Assembly: GCA_904063045.1 (NCBI GenBank)
Contig: CAJFCJ010000007.1
Span: forward strand, 3,479,404 to 3,543,403
DNA: 64,000 nucleotides
DNA from: Dimorphilus gyrociliatus
Lineage: Eukaryota; Animalia; Annelida
Direction of reading: 5' to 3'
The notes under the pieces are model-generated. The model ran no database searches and was not told the origin of the DNA. It worked only from the letters and a program-made list of their open reading frames with translations. Made by a program: the position numbers and the translations under genes. Positions 25,700 through 63,500 of this stretch are shown here, piece by piece (positions within the stretch are counted from its first letter, which is position 1; each line of letters opens with the position of its first letter).

Positions 25700-27030
25700 T
25701 TAACATAACCAATACATTCATGTTTCTTTTTTACTAATATTAAAAAATTTGGAACAGACTAACCCCGTAAGTTATACAATAATAAGTTTACTATTGTCAC
25801 TGCCTTTTGTCATTCAAGTGATTTTTATAGCTTGGGTGTGCCAGTCAAAATTTCTTCTCAATTCTAAAATCCTTTCTATTAATAGTGTTTTACATTATCT
25901 ATTTAATTAAAACATGATTTTATTTCTAGGAAGTGGAAAAAGAAAATCAGAGGTTAGAGAAATTAAAGAGGTTAAGGGAAGAACAAGAAAAACAATGGAA
26001 AAAAGATTTACAAGATGCGGATGAGTGTGAGAAAATATATGAAACTGCTAAAGCTGGTGAGGAAAATGCAAATAGGGAGGCGGATAACGCTAGAGATAGA
26101 GCTAAAAGAACGGCTGATGACAATGAACGAAGAGAGGCGGAAGAGAGAGAACAGAGGGCTAGATTAAACGCTAAGGAAAATAGGAACAAGAAAATAAGAT
26201 ATAATCTGAAGGTAGCTGTGAAGAGAAGAGATAGAGAACGACTTCCGCCTGCTGTTGACGAGTTTAAGAAAGCAAAACTTCCCGATGATGATATGGATTT
26301 GGCAAAAGCTGAAAGATTATTGAGGGAGTTCCAAGCCAGAGACGGTTTACAAAAGGCTATGTCTCAAAGAGAATTGAAAGCATTGGAAAAGGCCATTGCG
26401 TACGTGAAAAGAAGTGGATTTGAAATGGAATTGGCTCATGAACTATTAGAAGCCAATCGTATATTACTCCAATTAAGAAGACTTGAGAGAATCCGAGCTG
26501 AAATCCTTGAACTTAAACAATCGACTGTGGCCGAAATAAGAAGTTATCAGAAACCGCCAGAGATTGTACACGTCGTTATGACTGGTACATTCCTAATTTT
26601 GGGTCATAAAGAGAAGGAGACTAAAGTTTGGAAAACAGTTCAGAGTCTTGTTGGTAAGACTGGAAAAGAAGGTCTCAAACGTAGGTGTTTAGAATGTAAC
26701 CCAGATAACATCAAAGATGAAGATGCAAAGAGGGCGAAGAAGTTAATGTCATCGTTTGATTTGGACGATGTTAGAGACGTTTCCGCTGGTGCAGCAACAT
26801 TTTACGTATGGTCTATGACAATGATTGAAGAAAAGCAAATTCGTATAGAGGCGAAGAAACGGGAAGCGGAAGAAAAGTTAAAAGAGCAGAAAGAACGAGA
26901 AGAAAAGGAGGAAGCTATTAAAAAACAAAGAGCAGAGGCGGCCAAAACACCAATAGACACACAAAAAAGTTTAGATAATAGCGAAACAAACCCTACAAAA
27001 ACTGATGAAAGTAACGAAACTGGGAATTAG
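24631..27030 (+). CDS. EF-hand + charged coiled-coil protein with C-terminal dynein-stalk microtubule-binding-domain-like region
   Basis: Two degenerate EF-hand loops (DKNFIGELTAEQ, DTENSDTISEEQ) and E/R/K-rich coiled-coil exons, followed by ELKQSTVAEIRSYQKPPEIVHVVM...W...DVRDVSAGAATFYVW. Introns at 24942-24999, ~25182-25232, ~25383-25446, 25520-25579 and 25636-25929. Confidence 0.8.
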
Positions 27031-47847: not shown

Positions 47848-48784
47848 CGATATATTATCAATAATTGAATAACTTATCAAGAATACGCCTAATTTGAACT
47901 CGGTTGTTCTCTTAATACTTTTTTATTTTTCTGTTCAAGCTAACTATCTTTCTTTTCGTCCCTCTCTACGCCTGTCTGTTTGTCTCACTGTCTGTCAATC
48001 AAATTTTTGGTATAGAAATTTTATGTACCTGTTGCTAGAGCTCTTCTCTTTTCAAAGTAATAACCAACCATAACTATAGATGGTAAATACATTAAACCAA
48101 AGCCAAAACCTGTAAATGCAATATGAGTAATAAAATAGACCTATTTTATTTCTATTAATTCTCTTACCTCCCAATGCACCAAAGGTCACAATCAGTACAT
48201 TAATATTTGGACTAAAAGTCGAAAGAATAAATGCAATTGTTGATACTATACTCCCAATTATTGTTACTCTCCTACAACCGAATTTATTAGCGAGAGCACT
48301 AACAAGTGGACCTGAAACATAAAATCTTGTTGAAATATATAATTTATAGATATAAATGTATGTAATCATATATAATTAGAATAGAAAGAAAAGATGGAAA
48401 ATTTGTAAATTACCCATAGATAAATACATCCCATTTAACACACTTCCAACAACAGATGTTTTTCCCTTAGATTCCTGATTTTTTTGTAAGAAATTTAATT
48501 TAACAGTTAATTTATAGATGTAATTCTTACCTGGAAATACTCTAGGAATTGAATATAGAATATTCCGAATGAAAAGCAAACACCATCAACAATAAGATTA
48601 ATTATAAAACTAGAAAACATAATAACCCATCCAAATCTGAGTGAATAGAAGGAAAAAAACATATATAGGTGATTATATAAATATCTATAAGACATCTATA
48701 TAAATATTACCCCCCATCCGGTGGTACTGGAAGCTCTGATAAATTTTCCTCTCTTTCCTCATCCTTATTCGCTTTCGAACTCAT
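45748..48784 (-). CDS. Monocarboxylate transporter (SLC16/MCT family, MCT12/14-like), multi-exon
   Basis: LPVPPDGG|[71 protein letters not shown]. The last exon ends ...KSISE*. Confidence 0.9.
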
Positions 48785-51611
48785 TTTTTCTCTTTATAAT
48801 TTACTATCTTTTTTTCTTCTTCTTCTGTTTCTTTTTTCTCTTGTTCTTGTTCTTTTTTTATGTTTCTTGCTCAGTTTAATTTTCCTTTCGTTGTTGAATT
48901 TTTATTGCAAGTTGGAAAAAAAGAGTGAGAAAGGGAGAAATAAACGAAGAGAAAAAAAATCCTAATATAACTTGTTTTTTTTCTTTCAAATTCAATATTA
49001 TTCCATTATAGCCGGTTAATATCTGTTTAGAAACATAAATATAATATAATAGTTCATGACGAGAGAGAGAGAGAGAGAGAGATTATTTCACTATCTACTT
49101 TAAATCTATCTAGCAAGAGACAGAATGCTGACAGCCTTTCATCCAGAAATGATGATGTACATTAACAAGAGAAAAATTGAACTTTTTTTTAAAGTATAAA
49201 ACATAAATCAGTTAAACTGATAAAGGCACAATAGACTAACGTTTGATAAGCTGAAAAGATTTATTCTTATCTCTTTTTGAATATACAAGGTGACGTTTCG
49301 TGATTGCAAAATGTCTCGTATAGAAGGAAATTGTTCTAATGTTCTTTTATTCTATTCTATTAAGACTTTATTCGAATTAAAATCTAAAATAATATTAAAA
49401 ATTATACACGTTTATTAAATTTCTTAAGGAATGAACGAATATCGTTAATATTATCCTTAGTCTCTTATATTCTATATGTTGAATCAGCTGATAAAAAGAA
49501 TATAATCTAAAACGTTGATTTAAAGGCAAATTTCACGAACTTTGTATTGTAAATAAGAAAATCATATCAACAACTTACACGTGGTTTCTTAAAATGAATA
49601 GCAAGTCATCGATTCATTATGAAATATGAATTTTAATAACCTAAATTCTCTCACTTTCGGATTGAACTAATGTGAAATGTTGATTTTGCCATGTTGCTGC
49701 GGAAGGGTTCCCATTTACTATGGTAATTTTTCTCATTTTAACTAATTTATTTACTAATAGTTATTCATTTTTAATCGGTTAAAAATTTCTAATAAAGTTA
49801 ATATTTTATATAATAAATAGAAACTTACTATTTCAGTTCTTATCGAAGACTGATTTGCCTAAAATCAGCCTCCATCAACAATTGACATACTACACCCAAC
49901 CTTAAACGTTTCCATCCACTGTAAGCTATAGGGCAGGCAGCGTATCCTAGAGAATAGTCTATTCTGCTCGTATTTGCACCAGTATATGTAATAAGCCTAT
50001 AGATTTGAAAGCAAATGTTTCATAAAGCATAAAATAGCTCACAAATTGTTAAAAATCTAGTTACATAACGTACATTCTATATATATAAATTTATATATAT
50101 ATGATTGATTCTCTTCGTAGGCCTAAACTGTTTCTGTATGCACAAAAGATCATTAATATAGTTAAACGTTTATATATATATATATATATGTATAGAAATT
50201 TCATTGAAATACGCTATAACAGAGTCTATCACATATATTATTACACACATATGTATTACTTAAAAATTCGTTCAAGGTTATAATCTTTATTATCTGTTCT
50301 TAAACTATATCTCAAATCTTCTCTTAATCGAAATACAAATGACCAATTCAAAAATTAATCGATAATCTTATGTTATTTTTGATAATCTTACAGATAAATC
50401 AATTACTTATTACTTAATAGAGTATAGATGTATAATCCATCTTCTTCTCTCATTATAGATTATCTTATCTTAATCAACTATTATTTACGTGCATACATAT
50501 ATTAAAAAATAGGTCTAGTATAATTACGAATAAACATACAGACTTGTTTAAAAGTTGAAGAAATAGTGTTGTAGAAAAAGAGAAAAGAAACGATGATTCT
50601 ACTAAAAGAGTTGAATGACCTATTCAAATATAATCTTTTTCTCTTACCAAACAACTTGTATATGTTATATAAAGAAATATAAGACAAACATGTATAAATC
50701 TTTATTATATATATAAATATATCTCTTTAATTCTTTGTTGTTTTCCATATTCTTAATTTTCAATTCAATACAAGAGTACAAACTCTTTGACATGTTTATT
50801 ATAATTATAACCAGAACTTTGTCAGTACTTGATCCTTTTTTTGTTGTTATTGTTGTTGTTATTGTTGTTTGTATTGTATTCTCTTAGTACAACACTCTTC
50901 TATGTATTGTATATATATATATATAAAATCATATACATCTATCATCCTCATCCATCCCATACAAGTAAGCTTTTTAGAAAGAAATCAATATTTTTTGAAT
51001 GCATACAAAATTAAAAAAAATGCATAAAAGACAATCTCAACATGGACGAAGGATTAGACACGAAGATACAGACAGACACCTGTTGATATTTACTACAAGA
51101 GAAAGACTTTGATACCACTTTGTACAAATTTCTACTACAAGTATCTACTTTAAAGTAGCATATAAATTTACGTTGTTGCATTATTAATGGACTATTTAAT
51201 CTATTTTTATACTATATGTAGCAAAAGATATAATAATAATGAGATTAATAGTTAAAAGTTCAAATCAAAGGTCTCTCTCTGTCTCTCTCTCTCTCTTTTG
51301 GTTTTTCATAATATGAATAGGATGAGAGAGAAATAACAACAACAAAAAATACTCCTTAATTATTCCTATTCTCACTTTCTTTCAATTTAATCCAATTAAA
51401 TAAACAAATGACAAACTTATCCTTAACGAAGAGTATGGAAGAGAAAATAGAAGAATAATATAAACGGAAATAAGTTTTACCTGTTCAGAATCATGAAATT
51501 GATTGAAATAGGTAAATTCAAAATATTGTAGCTTAAGGGTAGAGAAATTTCTCAAGAAAATAAAATTCTCGAAGCGTGTTTGACCTGATTTTAGACCAGC
51601 TAATTTTTTTC

Positions 51612-52334: not shown

Positions 52335-52624
52335 CTAATTCTTATTATTAATTAATCCTGAGCTATCATTTTCCATTTCCGGTTCGTTCTGATTCCAGTT
52401 TTTATAAAATACATCACCTGACTGCCCAGAGTTACTTCCACCGGAACCACTAACCTATACATATATACATATGTTTATTGATGTGTTTACGTGTACATTA
52501 ATATATACAATGTATACTATATGACAAAGGTAAAGAATCGTACATCACCAGATCCAACATGATTAGAATTAAGTTGAACGATAATACTAATCAAAATCAG
52601 AATGATTAGCAAACGATAACTCAT
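52335..52624 (-). CDS. Secreted Ser/Gly-rich micropeptide A (66 aa), absent from the ORF track
   Basis: Exon 52624-52544, GTACGA..TATAG intron, exon 52454-52335: MSYRLLIILILISIIVQLNS-NHVGSGD|VSGSGGSNSGQSGDVFYKNWNQNEPEMENDSSGLINNKN*. Confidence 0.8.
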
Positions 52625-53150
52625 TTTCTACTTTTTCTTCTTCTTGTCTTCTTATTATAGTATCTTTTGTAGATTGGCCAAAAAGACGGATTAATACACG
52701 GAACGTATATTATCCAAACGTATCTGATAGACAATGATTCCAATTATTCTTTTTTATACAGTAAATTAATTGAAAAGAGTTCATGACTCTTGCGATTATG
52801 TAATGATTGTAGTATTTGTCCTATTAGAACCTATGACTATTGGCAAACTGAGAACTAAGTAATATTCATTCGTTCTCTCTCTCTCTCTCTCTCGCTCGCT
52901 CTTCAGTCCATTTACAACCATTTGTTTCTTTTAGTTTTTTTATTCAAAATCAAAATGAACATATAAAATCAAACAATGATATAGAATAGGTATGAAAATG
53001 ACATATATATCTATATATATCCACTAGAGGGAGCTTTAATGCTTCATTTCCAGAATGTATTGGAATAAAAGGCCCAACTGAGAATTCACTTGCTAAAGGC
53101 AAATGAAACTAAACTAGTTTGGAACCCAACTTCTTTCTTTGCTCTTTCCT

Positions 53151-53420
53151 TTACTTCGTAGGTTGTTCAGCAGCTTCATTGCCATTGTCACCACCTTCGT
53201 TGGCTTCATTTCCAAAAACTCCTCCAGAACCCTCGGATCCACTTCCTCCAGATCCCTTTTGGAATAGAGGAATTGATTGATATAATAATACAACATTTTA
53301 GTAAGTTTTACTTACACTGCCAACAACATCCGGAGTAGCCGTAGTGTCTTCAGTAGGAGCAGAATTCACTTTTGTCAAAGCGACAATCATTAAGAAGACG
53401 AGGAGCATACGGAAACCCAT
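53151..53420 (-). CDS. Secreted Ser/Gly-rich micropeptide B (69 aa)
   Basis: Exon 53420-53316, GTAAGT..AAAG intron, exon 53255-53151: MGFRMLLVFLMIVALTKVNS-APTEDTTATPDVVGS|GSGGSGSEGSGGVFGNEANEGGDNGNEAAEQPTK*. TATA at 53529-53536. Confidence 0.85.
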
Positions 53421-55960
53421 TGTAGAATAGTAGTGTAGAAGATTCCTTTCAGAAATAAACTTGTAAGTTGGGAGAAGCGTCGATGTTGACTGTTCAAGTT
53501 GTATGAATACTCTGAGCTGAGACGCGCTCTTATATACCCAAAAATTCTGGCGTTAGAGTTCATGACTTTGCCTTATTGCATAATTTAACGAATAGGATTC
53601 AAACCCTTGAAAAAAAAATCCTTACTTCAGCATTTTTCCAATCTCCTTTCTCTTCTAATTTTGTTAATTTGAGTACGAGATTATTCTTTATTTAATGTAA
53701 GAATGTTAACGATTTTAGGTTTTTTATCTACATCTTCTTGTTCTTTTTCTTCTTCTTCTTTTGACTATTTCTTTAGTTAGGTGATAAAAAAAGGCTAAAA
53801 CAAAGCATGAAAGGATGAGTAATCTATTCACTGATTACTCTTTTATTCTATCATTCAAAAGAATGGAACAATTTTTGCTTGAATAATTAATAAAGATTTG
53901 GGAAAATATTATCATTTTTCTTCTTCTGGTGTCCTTATTATTTATTAGATTTTATATAAAAACAAATCTGCAATGTTATATTAAAACTAGTAAGACAAAG
54001 ACCTGAAAAGACGCTACAGGTAAACAAGAATATAACGCGCAAAGTCAGCACATTTTTACATCTCTCACCTTTTGAACCTTTTCTTTTGTATCGATAAATT
54101 TGACGACTAAGCAACTTTCGGAAATAGGAAAACGACAGAAAAGCAAGAAAAATCTTAAAGTTCATTCCAAAGTTTAAGTAGTATTTAACAGATTCAAAAA
54201 AAAATAATAATAGATTAATTATTCATGTAATTAATATTCAAATATATTCATATAGAAAACACTTTAATAAGAATGGAATATTCCATTATAAAAATAAGAA
54301 TTTTTCATGACAAATTTAAGTTTGTTTCTTATTTTTTTTATATTAAAAATCAAGTATGATCTCCTTGGACTTGAAGTAAAAACTAATGCGTTTTTTTACA
54401 ACTTGACCTAATTTTTTTTGGATGATAAAAACAGTAACATCTTTTTGATATTACTTTTCAACAAAATATTTAATTCCATTTTAAAATTCTTGAAAATCGT
54501 TCGTTTGGTCAACTTAGGGCTTGGAGGGAAGGGGAGAAGGTGGGATGGTGGTGGTGGATGAGGAATCACTGAATTTCTAAGAAAGTCGAAAGAAACGCCT
54601 GTTTGTTTTCAATGAAACCCGTTTAATATTCAATTTTTTTAGATACGACTTCCGACAGATGGCGCACGTGTGAAAATTTTCTATATTTTTCTTTGTTTAT
54701 GATTATTTAGATTGAATAATTGAAATTGAAGGAAAAGTTCATAAAATTCTGTTCAAGGACAGAAGAGTAACGAAAAGAGAAGAATTCCTTCTTTCTCCTT
54801 TCTTACTCATTCAATAGAAACTGTTTCAAAATATTAATAAACAGGTAAACTATTTCAAGGCTACCTTTTGCTTTCAAAAGGGCTTACTTCAGCTAGATTT
54901 ATTTAAATTTGTTTGAAATATTATAGCCCAAACTCTTCTTTTAGGGTTATGCATTGAATGTTTTATATACAATATTATCACGTGATCAGTGCATGCTTTT
55001 TGTAGCAATATTTGCAGTCTTATATCTATAGTTTAAAGTATATAAATAGCCTACAACAATAAAATAAAAAATGTAACGCCCACGAAGGAAAAAGAAACGT
55101 TTGGTGTTTTTTTTTCTTGTCAATCATTGGTTACAATATATTACCTAAAAAGTATCTTTCCTATTAGCATTCTCTCTTACTATTTCTAGTAAGCGTCGAA
55201 TGCAGTTTTGGAAAATAATGCAGACAAGCAAAAGAAAGGTGAGATCAAAGTTCTAGTTTTCAATTTGATTGCATAATTCTTATAATATATAGAAATATAG
55301 TAATGTAGAAAATCTTCAATCCTAGTACGCTTTTAAAATATATACAAATTTCGCTTGGTCAGCTAATTTCCGTTGTTTACCTGTTAACCTTTGATATCTA
55401 TTCTCTCTGTCTCTCTTTCAGCTTGGATTTTCCTTAATAAATTTAACAGGTCGTCTACATATAAAACATCTTTACATTGCAGCAAACTATCTTGTCTTTC
55501 CCTTTTAATATCATTGACATTTTATCGTTCATTCATTTATAATTAATATCGGATATGGAAGTATTGTCTTACTTTGGGGAAATTCTTTAAGATAGGAAGA
55601 TATGAAGCTCTTACTTAAAAAAGGCAAATGGGGAAGGAAACATAAAAAAATTAAAAAGATAGAAAAGAACTTTTCTTGCTTTATCTTCTTCTTCTCCTTT
55701 AAAATGTATGAAATTCTCTACAAGAATAATATTACTCTCTCTCTCTCTCTCTCTCTCTAACTTGTCATCATTCTACTATACTAGTTTCATTTCATATCGA
55801 TAGATGGAGTCAAATAGTAGATTTAATGGTTTTATTCATAAGTCAAACGTATCACTACTTAGATGAACTATAAAGTTAATAATGTAAAATTTCTAAAGAG
55901 ATATCACGTATTTTTCAAACTTCTTATCTAATCCATCATTCTTAATTCTAAATATCCTTC

Positions 55961-56237
55961 TCAAGTAGTATAAGGGGGATCCTGATCACTACCCGATTCT
56001 CCAGCCGATTCTGATCCTTCAACTCCATTTTCGCCGCCTCCTGATCCTAAATTTGTTCCACTTCCTCCCGATCCGTCACCAGATGCTCCCTAAAATGGTA
56101 TTTTTTTTAAAAAAAGAGTATTTCATTAGTATTTATTAATAAGCGAACGTTTCAAAAATTATTCTTACATCACTATCACCGAATACTTGAGCAATGCTAA
56201 AAATCATAAAGATGATGAGACAAATACGATAATTCAT
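55961..56237 (-). CDS. Secreted Ser/Gly-rich micropeptide C (65 aa)
   Basis: Exon 56237-56169, GTAAGA..TTTTAG intron, exon 56089-55961: MNYRICLIIFMIFSIAQVFG-DSD|GASGDGSGGSGTNLGSGGGENGVEGSESAGESGSDQDPPYTT*. TATA at 56374-56382. Confidence 0.85.
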
Positions 56238-56265
56238 GACTGAATTAAATGTCAGAGATATAGGC

Positions 56266-56296
<31 letters not shown>

Positions 56297-59218
56297 GGAG
56301 AAGGTAAAGAGTTGTCAACTGTAGAGGTAGGTTGTTGGAGATGAACTGATGATTGAATGACGAAAATGGTACACTATATATACGTTTCTCCAGAGAGGTA
56401 ATAGTTCATGAACTTTTCTAAATTATATAATATAAATGTTCCTTATCTTTTTATTTACTTTTAAATCGGCGTTTAAATCGCAAAAAGGATGTGTATTAAA
56501 TATTTATTGAAATGTGAACGAGTATACATTGTACTTGCAGTTTTAAATGAACGAATTAGATGGTTGGATGGATGGATGGATGGAGTTATGCAGCTGGTTT
56601 TGTTACAGAATAACAAAATGTTTGTAAAAAGGATTTAAAGATTACTATCCAAATCTGTAATAATTTTTAAGGATCTAATAAAAGAGTTGTTAGATCTATC
56701 CCTCTCCTCATCTTTCTCTTCTCCCTCCTTTATATCCCCCTACCCCTCTTTCATAAACTCTTAAAGATTATATAAATAATCTTTTATTAAATAATTTCTT
56801 TACATTTTAATTTAAGTTCATGAACTTTTCCAATTACATAATTTGGAACTTTTCTTATCTTATTTACAATTGGAATTTATTTACATTAGGTCAATTTATA
56901 ATATCGAAATTTGGACCCTAAGTTTACTGCATCAAATATAATAAACAATAGTAATAAATTAATTGTTAAAATCTCTATATAGATAAATCAATTTTATCTT
57001 TCTACTTGTAAAAATCTGGTTGAGAAAGAGAATGGGGAAGATGGGAGAAAATCTCAAATAAATGCTATTTTATTATTTTATTGCAGTACAAGAGTTATTT
57101 TTTTCCTTTTTAGTTTTCTATTTATAGACTGAAATACTATGGTATCTATACTCTATAAATATCTACATTATAATTATACTGGTCATTGTCAATTAAACAA
57201 TATCAGATAGGTTTGTAAAATCATCCAGCAGGCAGTAACAACAACAATCAATTCTAATAGAACAGTGTTGATTATTAATATAAATGTTTCTAAACAATCA
57301 TCTATGTTATTCCGAGAAATAAATCATTATAATAAAAGTGTGAAGCCATATTTTTTGTCTTTGTCAAGGTCTCTAACGCTTTTAACATTCATTTCTTCAA
57401 AGCTATTCGATACCTTGTATTCGAACTTGATAAGAGTTTTTGAGGTTTTTTTTAATTGATGCTCAAACTTCTAACAGTTTAAAAGGAGAAGAACTTTGCA
57501 GTTAAGGTTGAACAACTTTGAAATATTGAATATACTGTATGTTTTTTATCCTTATAAAAACTCTTCTGTAAGCCCAATCATTTAACATTCGTAGTTAATT
57601 ATAATAGATCAAAGCTAGTATTCATATAAAAACTTTTGCACTTTGATGTGATAAAAATTGTTGCAAATTCTTTTTATATATCATTCCAAGGTGATCTTAC
57701 ACTTCATTAATTTAGTGAATGTTGTAGGGCACTAGTTCAATTAGGAAGAGAAGCTTATCCAAGGATAATCTCAATCTTAATCTACATTTTGGTTAAATAG
57801 TAAAATATAAAATATTCTGCCTCCATTGTTCATTTACGAAGATGTTGGAGAAGCGAATTTTCGGGTAGGATCCTCAAGCTGCAATTGGATTAAGGTAGGC
57901 AAGAAGTAACAAATGATGAATTTCTGAGTGTCAGGTATGAGTTGTTGGTTCGTTCAAATCCAATTTAGTTGGAGTATTCATTTGCGAATACTTTCAAGTT
58001 GAAGTAGAACTAGAATCTATTAGTTAGTGACTGATGAATGAGGAATATACACATTTAACAATAAATCAATTACAAAAATAAGGCTAAACAGAGGTTTATT
58101 ACAAAACATCTCGACTTTACATGACAAATGAAACACTTGGCCATAGTTCTTTCATCCAGAAGAATTGATGAACTATATTATAAGACTATACTTTGCTATT
58201 TATATCTAAGTAAATAATGTTGGTTTTCGATAGATGGAGCTGTATGTCATTAAGGTGTTAATAAGATGTTTAATTATGTTCCTATAAAAAAATTCCTGTA
58301 CTCATTGGAGACGTAATTTCCGGTTTGTTGTTGTTAGCTTTAATTCGCTCTTTCATCCTTTTTTCACGATGTTAAATATATATAGAATAACCAGTTAACA
58401 AATTGAAAGGAATGGAAAAGATAGAATTGTAGAACTTTTTCATCTGATACATGCAACTGTTTATATACTGTCTGAATACATAGACCTACACAATCTAATT
58501 ATAGCCAACAACATTGTTATTCGCTAAATATTTGAAAAACCCCTCCTTCTCCCAACACCCCTTCTTTCAGTTTTTTTATCGGAAAGGTTTTTATAAAATT
58601 ATCCAATATTACGTAATCATTAGATTAAGACTCTATCATTGGTTTTTTTCTATTTTAAGGAGAGTTTTTTTTTTCAATTGAAAGGAAAATCGTTCACAAC
58701 CAAAGTCTTTCGCTTGATATTTTAAACAAGTACAAACTATATTGAAAAGTTTAACGTTTCCCTTAAAAATATCTTATTTTTCTTCCATTTTTTCCCTCTT
58801 TCTATTATTATCTTCTTTTTCGGGATTCTATAAAAGGATATTATAACAGAAAGAGTCTTTCATTTTATTGAAGAAATAAATAAACAAACATAACAATTAG
58901 TAATTAATTAGGTTGTTTGTTTATAATATTCTTTTTATATGCAAATGTAAAAGTATCAAGACATCCTCCATGATAATTTTAGGAAGTGTCAATAGATTAA
59001 AGGATAAGTTTGTTATTGATTTTTTTAAGTTTCATTTCTTATCATCTTTATGTACCAGTTTATTTTATAGATTTACTTTAATGAAAGTTTTTTAATTTAA
59101 TTAATTGGATTTCGAATGATAGAATAAAACGTTTTAAACGCTTTAGTGTTTTTCGCTTGAAACTAATCTTTTGTTATCTTTCAAGAATTCTGAATTTCGA
59201 AATTTGTAAGCTTACAAG

Positions 59219-59310
59219 TGCGTTACGTCATATTACGTTAGGGTATCAAAGTCACGTGATAATTTCGTTACGAAATACCCCGTGTATATATAAAGAGAGC
59301 TTTACGTACA
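59219..59310 (+). promoter_or_regulatory. TATA promoter with clustered bZIP/bHLH sites
   Basis: TTACGTCA 59223, TTACGTTA 59233, GTCACGTGAT 59251, TTACGAAA 59268, TATATATAAAG 59285, TTTACGTA 59301. Confidence 0.7.
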
Positions 59311-60525: not shown

Positions 60526-63500
60526 ATGAGTCAACGTGTCCAGCCCTTATCTTCTTCTCCAGCTAGAAGACGGTAAATAGAAAGATTTATTGTGGGCGTT
60601 ACTATTTATGTTGTTATTTATTATCAAACCATTCATTCATTCATTGCTGACTATTTTTGTCCAAAAAATTTTCTTTAATAAGAAACAAAAAGAGGAAATA
60701 AACCTAAACTGTACTTTCATTAATAACCTTCACAGTGTTCGTTTGAATTCTGTATGCCGAAAGATTGATTGTGTTAAATTAAAAGAGTAAGTTTGTTTTT
60801 TTGTTTCTCAAGCGTTTTCTAATTCTATTTCTCCTCTTCCTACTCTTACATGATTGAATGATTGAACAGATGGTGATGATGATGATGATTTTTTTATTAA
60901 TTACTTAATTATCTAAATTTTAATAGGAATGAATTATTCGACCTTGATCTGTTGGTTAGCTCTTTAAAAACAACTGCACCGAAATATAAAGCAAATGGTA
61001 GAGATTGGTCAATAATTGCGTCAGGAGAGCTTTCATTACAACACAAGAAAGATTTAAGCCTACTTGAAAGTTTCGCGAAAATATACTATGAAGAAAGGAA
61101 CTTCAGTAGACTTAAACATAAACAAACTTTTTCAAATATTCTTAATTTGATTGTCGATAATCGTTTAAAGAAAAAAGGATGGATTCAAAATTCTCACGCA
61201 AAGCTCATTCATCAAGTTCTTCTATGCCTAAGATTGCTATTAAGAGATATTAAGTATTTGGAAGATTTTATAGAAAAGGATGCTATCGAAGATTTAGTTG
61301 GATTGTTACAAGTTTCAATAGAAACCTATTTCGAAGCAATTGACCATTATCACCTAGTTGATATTATACTGGAATTAACTAGTTAGTTTATCTTCGTTAA
61401 TTAAAATTTAATTGATAAAATCAACTTTCAATTATTTATACTTTCAATAGACATCTTCCAAAAACTAGCGTGCCATAAAGTGAATCTAATAGATTATTCC
61501 ATTCAAGATTGTCTTATTCAACTTTTACACTCGGAAGAGAGTTCCGTCTTGCAGTGTTGCCTTCATACTTTAATTGGTATCGGTAGCGATGGCGATAATC
61601 TGAAAATTCTAAGTGAATTAGACTTTGTTAATGATTTATTAAGGATTCTACAGGATAGCGAATCGAATGCTAAAAGTCTCGCTTGCAAATTATTACGTAA
61701 TTTATCCAGTTTTAATGTTGTTAAATCCGATGTACTTGCCCACAATGGCCTTACTGTTCTCTTAAGCCTGTTGAATTCGAATGAAAATTCAGTATCGATT
61801 CTCAGGAACGCCGCTTGGTGCCTAGTGAAATTAGCAACCAATCCAGAATGTCGTGAAGGTATTAAAAATAGCGGAGGAATACCTGTTCTCCTCTCTCTAC
61901 TTAGCGAAAAGAACTATTCTCCAGATCATCAGACTGGTATACATCCTGCAAGCGCATCAACAAGTAGAACACCTTTGAATGAGGTATTTCGAGTTTTTAT
62001 TTTTTATCATCCTTCTTATATCTACTTCCTGCCCTTCCTTCCATTTTTTAAATAGGTCTTTTCTTAATGTTTATAACGTTTTTGTCCAGCATCCAAAGGA
62101 TGATAAAGAGGTAACCAATTCGTTAAGCACAATTAATACATATGCGTTGTACTAGTTCGTTATTATTTTATATTTATATGTACATTTGTTTAAGCAGATA
62201 TTTTCCCATTTATTTTTGTTTTATAACTCTGAAAGCATATTCACTTTTCCTCTATCAATCCCTTCTCTTTCTTCCCCCCTGCCCCTCCTCTTCCCCTTCC
62301 TCCACCCCTTCTGCCTAATATATTTCTACAGTTAGATATTATACATGCATATATACTGTATATATAAATATCTCACATTGTTTAAAGAAACCCCATATAA
62401 TAATCAACTATTTATGTACTGTATCATTCTTATTACTTCTATATTAATTTTAAACAGTCGCAAAGTCAGGAATATCGTGATCAAAAGCTCCAACTGAAGT
62501 GTGCGTGTTGTACAGCTTTGGCTGAGATATCAAAGACCGATTCATGCGCTTATAAAATTGTTCAATCGAATGGAATTTATATTATATCATCTCTACTTTT
62601 CTTAACTGATACTTCACATTCCGAACGATTTAATTTAATGAAAAGTGTCTTCCGGGCTCTTAGATTTTTATTTTCATTAGATCGGAATAGACGTTATTTT
62701 AAACGCCTATTTCCGCCGAAGTTGCTTGAACCTTTTCTAGATGTTGGACATTACAATCACGATTTACAGGTAATCTAATCAAACATTTCCACTTATCATC
62801 AGATATTATTATATAATTGGTTTCTATTTAGGCCTACGAGTGTCTAGTAAAAACGTTTGACGATCTCGATTCGGACAATTATTTATTAATTAAGGATGCG
62901 GTTGCCCAAGTGAATTTAAATGCTGAACCAATGAAACAAGTCGAAGATTACTCGGTACTTGAACATTTAGGATCGGGTTCGTTTGGTAGTGTTTATAGAG
63001 TTAAAAAAATTGGTGGACAAACACAACTAGCGTTAAAAGAGATAAATACAATGCAAGCAAACTTTGGAAAAAATTCAAAAGAAAGGCAAAAAAGCGTTGG
63101 CGATTTAAATAACGAATTAAATATAATTAAAGAAGAATTACAACATCCAAATATAGTAAAATATTATAGAACTTTTGTTGATAGTAAGTGCATTAAATCG
63201 GCCTTTTGTATATATAGATATATTTATAACCTTAAAATCTTCCTTGTAATAGATAATAAGTTTTGTATTGTTATGGAATTAATTGAAGGAGCAGCTTTAC
63301 AAGAACATATATCCAGTTTAAAAGAGAGAAATGAAGGATTTGGAGAAGAACGAATTTGGGGGATATTTGTCCAAATAGTTAGAGCATTAAACTATTTGCA
63401 TAAAGAAAAGAAGATCATTCATAGAGATTTAAGCGCCAATAATATAATGCTGTCGGATACTGATAAAGTAACTATAAGTAAGGGGATTTTTTCATTCGTT

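Follow-up and report, generated by a model that had tools for sequence, protein, structure and literature searches.

A conserved TATA-proximal block upstream of three tandem secreted-peptide genes in the annelid Dimorphilus gyrociliatus

Three small genes (A, B and C) lie in tandem on the minus strand of a 64-kb stretch of the Dimorphilus gyrociliatus genome (contig CAJFCJ010000007.1; the whole stretch is called the window here, and all positions are counted within it). Each of them is preceded by the same short series of promoter elements, which raises the question of what this block is and why it has been retained. The original prediction had described a shared promoter grammar of fixed geometry in front of all three genes. 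This was confirmed, and the grammar looks selectively maintained. We consider it probable that the block is a compact TATA-dependent proximal module of ~55 bp, which was inherited by old tandem paralogues encoding secreted peptides and has been kept by purifying selection.

Read in the orientation of the genes, the elements of A, B and C follow one another in the same order: a 10-mer (ATTRYRTAAT), 8 to 10 nt, the core AARAG(T)TCATGAACT, 19 to 20 nt and a TATA box. A fourth full copy, module D, was found 412 bp upstream of module C. The modules and their parts are as follows.

52751..52804, minus strand: promoter module A, with the TATA box TATAAAAA (52758-52751), the core TCATGAACT (52786-52778) and the 10-mer ATTACATAAT (52804-52795), an exact D-box
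53529..53584, minus strand: promoter module B, with the TATA box TATATAAG (53536-53529), the core TCATGAACT (53565-53557) and the 10-mer ATTATGCAAT (53584-53575), a C/EBP-PAR hybrid
56374..56431, minus strand: promoter module C, with the TATA box TATATATAG (56382-56374), the 12-nt palindrome AGTTCATGAACT (56403-56414) and the 10-mer ATTATATAAT (56422-56431)
56811..56844, minus strand: module D, with the palindrome (56815-56826) and a 10-mer that is an exact D-box (56833-56842); nhmmer E value of 8.5e-06
52778-52788, plus strand: core motif of A as read on that strand, AGTTCATGACT
53557-53567, plus strand: core motif of B, AGTTCATGACT
56403-56414, plus strand: core motif of C, AGTTCATGAACT
52796: second motif of A, TTATGTAA
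53576: second motif of B, TTGCATAA
56423: second motif of C, TTATATAA

All motifs were found where the original prediction had placed them, including the TATA boxes at 52752-58, 53529-36 and 56374-82, which are of the TATAWAWR type (TATAAAAA in A, TATATAAG in B and TATATATA(G) in C). The distance between TATA box and core, given earlier as 20-21, is 20, 21 and 21 nt by the same way of counting (a spacer of 19 to 20 nt), and the offset between the core and the second motif, given as 18-20 bp, amounts to 18, 19 and 20 nt from start to start. Within the module, the spacers have kept their length and not their sequence.

A MAFFT alignment of the four upstream regions left even the motifs unaligned, and anchored comparisons were therefore used. 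When the upstream regions were anchored on the TATA box, A, B and C were found to share the 9-mer TCATGAACT at -28/-29, within 2 nt. Neither 5000 dinucleotide shuffles nor 5000 triples of real intergenic DNA drawn from this window gave a position-locked shared word longer than 6. Furthermore, AGTTCATGA occurs 8 times in the window versus 0.98 times expected (none of 100 shuffles reached 8), and the combination TCATGAACT-N17-22-TATAWAWR occurs 3 times versus 0 expected. Scanning the 64 kb with a profile of the four modules recovered exactly those four, with E values of 3e-06 to 3e-04, the next match having an E value of 0.46.

The genes downstream of modules A, B and C, as read from the DNA and translated exon by exon, have a common two-exon build. 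Exon 1 encodes the signal peptide, which begins with M-x-[Y/F]-R; it is followed by a phase-0 intron of 60 to 89 nt and by exon 2, encoding an acidic tail rich in Gly and Ser.

52344..52624, minus strand: gene A, ATG at 52624, exon 1 52624-52544 (signal peptide), exon 2 52454-52344 including the stop codon; product of 63 aa
52543-52455, minus strand: intron of gene A, GT..AG, phase 0
53151..53420, minus strand: gene B (DgyrCDS6495), ATG at 53420, exon 1 53420-53316, exon 2 53255-53151 including the stop codon; product of 69 aa
53315-53256, minus strand: intron of gene B, 60 nt, skipped exactly by spliced contigs from two public sequencing runs (X1 and X2)
55961..56237, minus strand: gene C, ATG at 56237, exon 1 56237-56169, exon 2 56089-55961 including the stop codon; product of 65 aa
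56168-56090, minus strand: intron of gene C, 79 nt, skipped by a spliced contig of one run (X1)

In the public annotation (GCA_904063045.1), gene B alone is called between a gene for a major facilitator superfamily (MFS) transporter and an ARM-kinase gene, and no gene is called at the positions of A (52344-52624) and C (55961-56237). Gene B is 100% identical to the NCBI entry DgyrCDS6495 [Dimorphilus gyrociliatus] from the same contig, which was the sole match of its exon 1 among 5.8 billion proteins. The family formed by A, B and C is apparently an orphan of one annelid. When the exons were compared separately, their peptides reached 44 to 55% identity at best over 20 to 29 aa, and because of this low identity over such short stretches the paralogues are evidently old. 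The conserved spacing had been put forward as support for the reality of the genes, in good agreement with the annotation of B and with the spliced transcripts of B and C.

Since the genes are paralogous, we compared them segment by segment, scoring the pairwise alignments as z values against shuffles. The pairwise z ranged from 2.4 to 5.6 for the module (54-58 nt), from 1.7 to 6.5 for exon 1 and from 2.3 to 4.1 for exon 2. For the far-upstream DNA, the 5' untranslated region (5'UTR) and the downstream DNA it ranged from -1.4 to 1.1, and for the introns from -1.4 to 1.4, with the exception of the pair B-C (3.3). Far-upstream, 5'UTR, downstream and most intron pairs are thus at the level of shuffled DNA, consistent with the earlier statement that no alignment extends into the DNA around the motifs. 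Only three short blocks have retained identity; the spacers between them keep nothing but their length, and this argues for purifying selection on the blocks. We conclude that the promoter block is real and evidently under such selection.

The transcript contigs were then related to the TATA boxes. The 5' ends of the contigs lie at 53490 (X1) and 53481 (X2) for gene B and at 56337 (X1) for gene C, that is, 45 to 55 nt past the first base of the TATA box. In X1, an Illumina adaptor directly follows 53490, indicating that the fragments truly end there. Assemblies from RNA sequencing usually lose the extreme 5' end, and contig ends at this distance are for this reason compatible with a start at ~+30. 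In each promoter, a TCA initiator-like triplet is present 33 to 36 nt past the first TATA base. The transcripts of B and C hence fit starts directed by the TATA box, with a TATAWAWR-type box located ~25 to 35 nt upstream of the predicted start, as in TATA-box core promoters. For adult D. gyrociliatus, cap analysis of gene expression (CAGE) and assay for transposase-accessible chromatin (ATAC) data exist; regulatory information was found mostly in promoters, and TATA promoters are narrow (PMC7854359).

Run X1 is a coral metatranscriptome. It contains spliced transcripts of B (~98% identical, 53003-53490) and of C (identical except for 2 gaps, 55992-56337), indicating that the worm or a close strain lives in that sample and that these mRNAs are abundant enough to be assembled. 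In X2, exact contigs were found in the gene-free gap between B and C (55363-55802), near a ATTGCATAAT site and a TATA-like run at 55268-55295. These contigs may stem from a transcript missing from the annotation or from genomic DNA that entered the library.

Which factor could read the core? The half-site consensus of nuclear receptors is RGKTCA (PMC1785376, PMC4314640), and AGTTCA fits it, in agreement with its earlier reading as such a half-site. An inverted repeat with zero spacing (IR0) had been proposed for all three genes. The perfect palindrome described for gene C is indeed present (AGTTCATGAACT, 56403-56414), and two inverted RGKTCA half-sites with zero spacing are found both there and in the gene-less module D (56815-56826). 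A and B, however, are one A short, and because of this missing base their second half-site (GAGTCA or AAGTCA) does not fit RGKTCA. What is invariant in all four modules, A to D, is TCATGAACT together with the AARAG flank on its distal side. This asymmetric conservation suggests that the selected unit would be one half-site with a three-base extension, or else the site of another factor. It argues that the constant unit is the AGTTCA half-site plus TGA (TCATGAACT with the AARAG flank) and not a symmetric IR0. The TREpal/IR0 nuclear-receptor element is AGGTCATGACCT and is composed of half-sites of the RGKTCA consensus. Modules C and D resemble it in having two inverted RGKTCA-type half-sites without a spacer, but the half-site here is AGTTCA instead of AGGTCA, the palindrome of A and B is broken by the missing base, and receptor binding at this locus is putative. 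Several other elements were considered for the core and rejected: a heat-shock element (A and B lack TTCnnGAA, and in C and D it amounts to two units without a third), AP-1 or an antioxidant response element (which fits B only), and p53-type, RFX X-box, STAT and FTZ-F1 sites, all ruled out on sequence.

The upstream 10-mer was compared with the D-box, the consensus of PAR-bZIP and E4BP4 (NFIL3) factors, RTTAYGTAAY (PMC6627103). This consensus is matched exactly over 10 nt in A (52795-52804) and D (56833-56842) and is unmatched in B (ATTGCATAAT) and C (ATTATATAAT). Of the bZIP sites proposed in front of each gene, that of A is thus an exact D-box by consensus and that of B a C/EBP-PAR hybrid (TTGCATAA), and that of gene C, ATTATATAAT, consists entirely of A and T, is a common word in this genome and lacks the central YG. 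Across the modules, the central positions read TG, GC, TA and CA. In the window, ATTRYRTAAT is present at 10 sites (18 strand-matches versus 4.2 expected), 4 of which are 8 to 10 nt from a core. G+C is ~30% in the cluster part of the window and the 10-mer is A/T-rich, and because of this a consensus match is weak evidence when taken alone. We regard a bZIP dimer as a reasonable candidate for reading the 10-mer.

As a separate observation, 9 strand-matches to RTTAYGTAAY were counted in the window versus 2.2 expected, and perfect palindromic D-boxes (ATTACGTAAT) are located at 58608-58617 and 61692-61701.

Under the preferred reading of a TATA-dependent proximal module, the 10-mer ATTRYRTAAT would lie at ~-75 from the predicted start, AARAG(T)TCATGAACT (14-15 nt) at ~-55 and the TATA box at ~-30. 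Two sequence-specific activators would bind the two upstream elements and act with TBP/TFIID, leading to co-ordinated, probably cell-type-specific (secretory cell) and high-level expression of the family. The 10-mer would most likely be read by a PAR/C/EBP-type bZIP dimer, and the core by a candidate factor for TGAACT + TCA, possibly a nuclear receptor binding as a monomer or as an asymmetric dimer.

Several results weigh against this reading. All copies of the module are paralogous, so that the statistics measure conservation and not independent recurrence. The profile scan detected no module outside the cluster in the 64-kb window, and none was found at an unrelated gene. An exhaustive phmmer search of 1.84 billion representatives with DgyrCDS6495 returned only gene B itself, that is, no orthologue. 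Additionally, gene A had no transcript contig in the two runs compared. Finally, an unspliced X2 contig (56305-56797) crosses the promoter of gene C. Should this contig be RNA, part of the transcription would begin farther upstream; X2 is of unrecorded library type and contains other intergenic contigs at similar depth, and the contig may be either DNA or read-through RNA.

The alternatives differ in what they make of the same block. According to the original prediction, an IR0 bound by a dimer of the VDR/PXR/CAR/HR96 type would, together with a PAR-bZIP/NFIL3/C-EBP site, make up a switch that responds to a ligand, to stress or to the clock. The fit of AGTTCA to RGKTCA, the perfect palindrome AGTTCATGAACT in C and D and the exact RTTAYGTAAY in A and D speak for such a switch, but in the promoters of genes A and B the palindrome is one base short and the second half-site departs from the consensus. 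A symmetric IR0 also leaves the asymmetric conservation of the AARAG flank unexplained, the center of the 10-mer varies, the site of gene C being all A/T, and in the searchable literature the 12-mer AGTTCATGAACT is found in two unrelated papers only and in neither as a response element. We thus consider this switch unlikely, and the label "nuclear-receptor IR0 + bZIP, ligand/clock switch" is a consensus-level guess, the IR0 part of which is contradicted by two of the three gene promoters.

If, instead, the block were a neutral leftover, i.e., similarity remaining from tandem duplication, or a short tract of gene conversion between the duplicates, that has no regulatory function, one would expect what is seen in part: a stretch of 7.8 kb holds all the copies, which are paralogous, and C and D are most alike, as are A and B, as a duplication history would predict. 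However, the neutral DNA on both sides and most intron pairs are at shuffle level, identity is limited to three short blocks separated by 19-20-nt and 8-10-nt spacers that keep only their length, and the block occupies the position of proximal activator sites, in front of TATA boxes with which the 5' ends of the transcripts agree. This explanation is in our view very improbable. The positions of the core at ~-55 and of the TATA box at ~-30 would also suit a small nuclear RNA (snRNA)-type promoter, in which the core would be a site for SNAPc resembling a proximal sequence element (PSE) and working with the TATA box. Such promoters give small, non-coding and unspliced RNAs, whereas the genes downstream of the block encode proteins with signal peptides and the mRNAs of B and C are spliced, which makes this last possibility scarcely credible.

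Beyond the three gene promoters, copies D and E (the latter of the core only) bear on the history of the cluster. Module D has no canonical TATA box at the usual distance. Downstream of it (56432-56814), no exon relic was detected, either as an ATG-started open reading frame of at least 20 aa or as an exon-like tblastn match. Likewise, neither local alignment of the DNA nor tblastn with the peptides of the individual exons revealed remnants of dead genes in the B-C gap or downstream of either D or E. Either module D was the promoter of a family member that has since been lost, or it is a second module upstream of gene C. Copy E is the following.

49048..49060, minus strand: copy E, core only (AGTTCATGAC, core at 49051-49059), with 13 nt (TAATAGTTCATGA) in common with module C

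It carries a (GA)n run in place of the 10-mer, and the first ATG of the MFS-transporter gene follows 268 nt downstream. Because ~1 such 9-mer should occur in the window by chance, and a match inside a coding exon at 26436 is clearly fortuitous, it is uncertain whether copy E is a genuine relic of the module. Under the preferred reading, D and E would be leftovers of birth-and-death evolution in the cluster, unless D serves gene C. Two further sets of candidate copies were rejected. A near-match at 54728-54741 (GGAAAAGTTCAT, plus strand) was not significant. In public metagenome contigs, the full composite had 4 matches, all of them A/T-rich, without the AARAG flank, unrelated and not associated with a comparable gene, at about the rate expected by chance.

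Some features of the neighboring DNA were observed in passing. A dense promoter region upstream of the plus-strand ARM-kinase gene (59200-59300) contains TTACGTCA and TTACGTTA, which resemble a cAMP response element (CRE) or a D-box, together with CACGTGA (an E-box) and TATATATAAAG, within ~80 nt. The annotated coding sequence of the MFS transporter appears to begin at an internal ATG near 48619 (region 48620-48783), and the true first coding exon of this gene seems to be one lying further upstream, with an ATG at 48783. (GA)n/(CT)n microsatellites are present at 49060-49082, 52868-52900, 55737-55760 and 56254-56304, beside or inside each cluster promoter or 5'UTR; they could be GAGA-factor-type sites or merely the common microsatellite of this genome.

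Similar footprints are known from other secreted-protein genes. In the glue, chorion and cuticle gene clusters of insects, tandem duplicates keep short position-locked elements near the TATA box while the neutral DNA is saturated, and these elements give co-ordinated, tissue-specific and high-level expression. The D. gyrociliatus cluster is alike in its saturated neutral DNA and in the position-locked upstream elements retained beside the TATA box, but it belongs to an orphan family of one annelid, its elements are different, and its co-ordinated expression is a prediction. Chicken vitellogenin II, a highly expressed gene for a secreted protein, has a palindromic nuclear-receptor element, a VBP site and a TATA box. 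The kinds of elements (palindromic receptor element, PAR-bZIP site and TATA box) are comparable, but the vertebrate receptor element is an inverted repeat with a spacing of three (IR3) and lies far from the TATA box, whereas here everything is within ~55 bp and the receptor site is putative. The block is a clean footprint between paralogues, which adds one more case to an ordinary class of promoters and shows no new regulatory principle. With four modules and saturated flanks, the observation is stronger than first stated.

A bolder reading is that the core is a true response element of a D. gyrociliatus receptor that is supposed to have undergone lineage expansion, the C/D and A/B versions being read by different receptor combinations. 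We offer this as a speculation that is more probably wrong than right by a wide measure. If it were true, a small molecule (sterol, hormone or xenobiotic) and a PAR/C-EBP bZIP would together switch on species-restricted secreted Ser-Gly peptides, and receptor expansion would be linked to orphan effector genes.

Independently of the factors involved, the conserved block supports the unannotated peptide genes A and C, and its two defined elements can serve as bait for finding the factors that bind them. It also provides a tractable promoter of <100 bp in an emerging annelid model with a compact genome, in which regulation lies near the start site (PMC7854359), and it may be of use as a small cell-type-specific driver for transgenesis.

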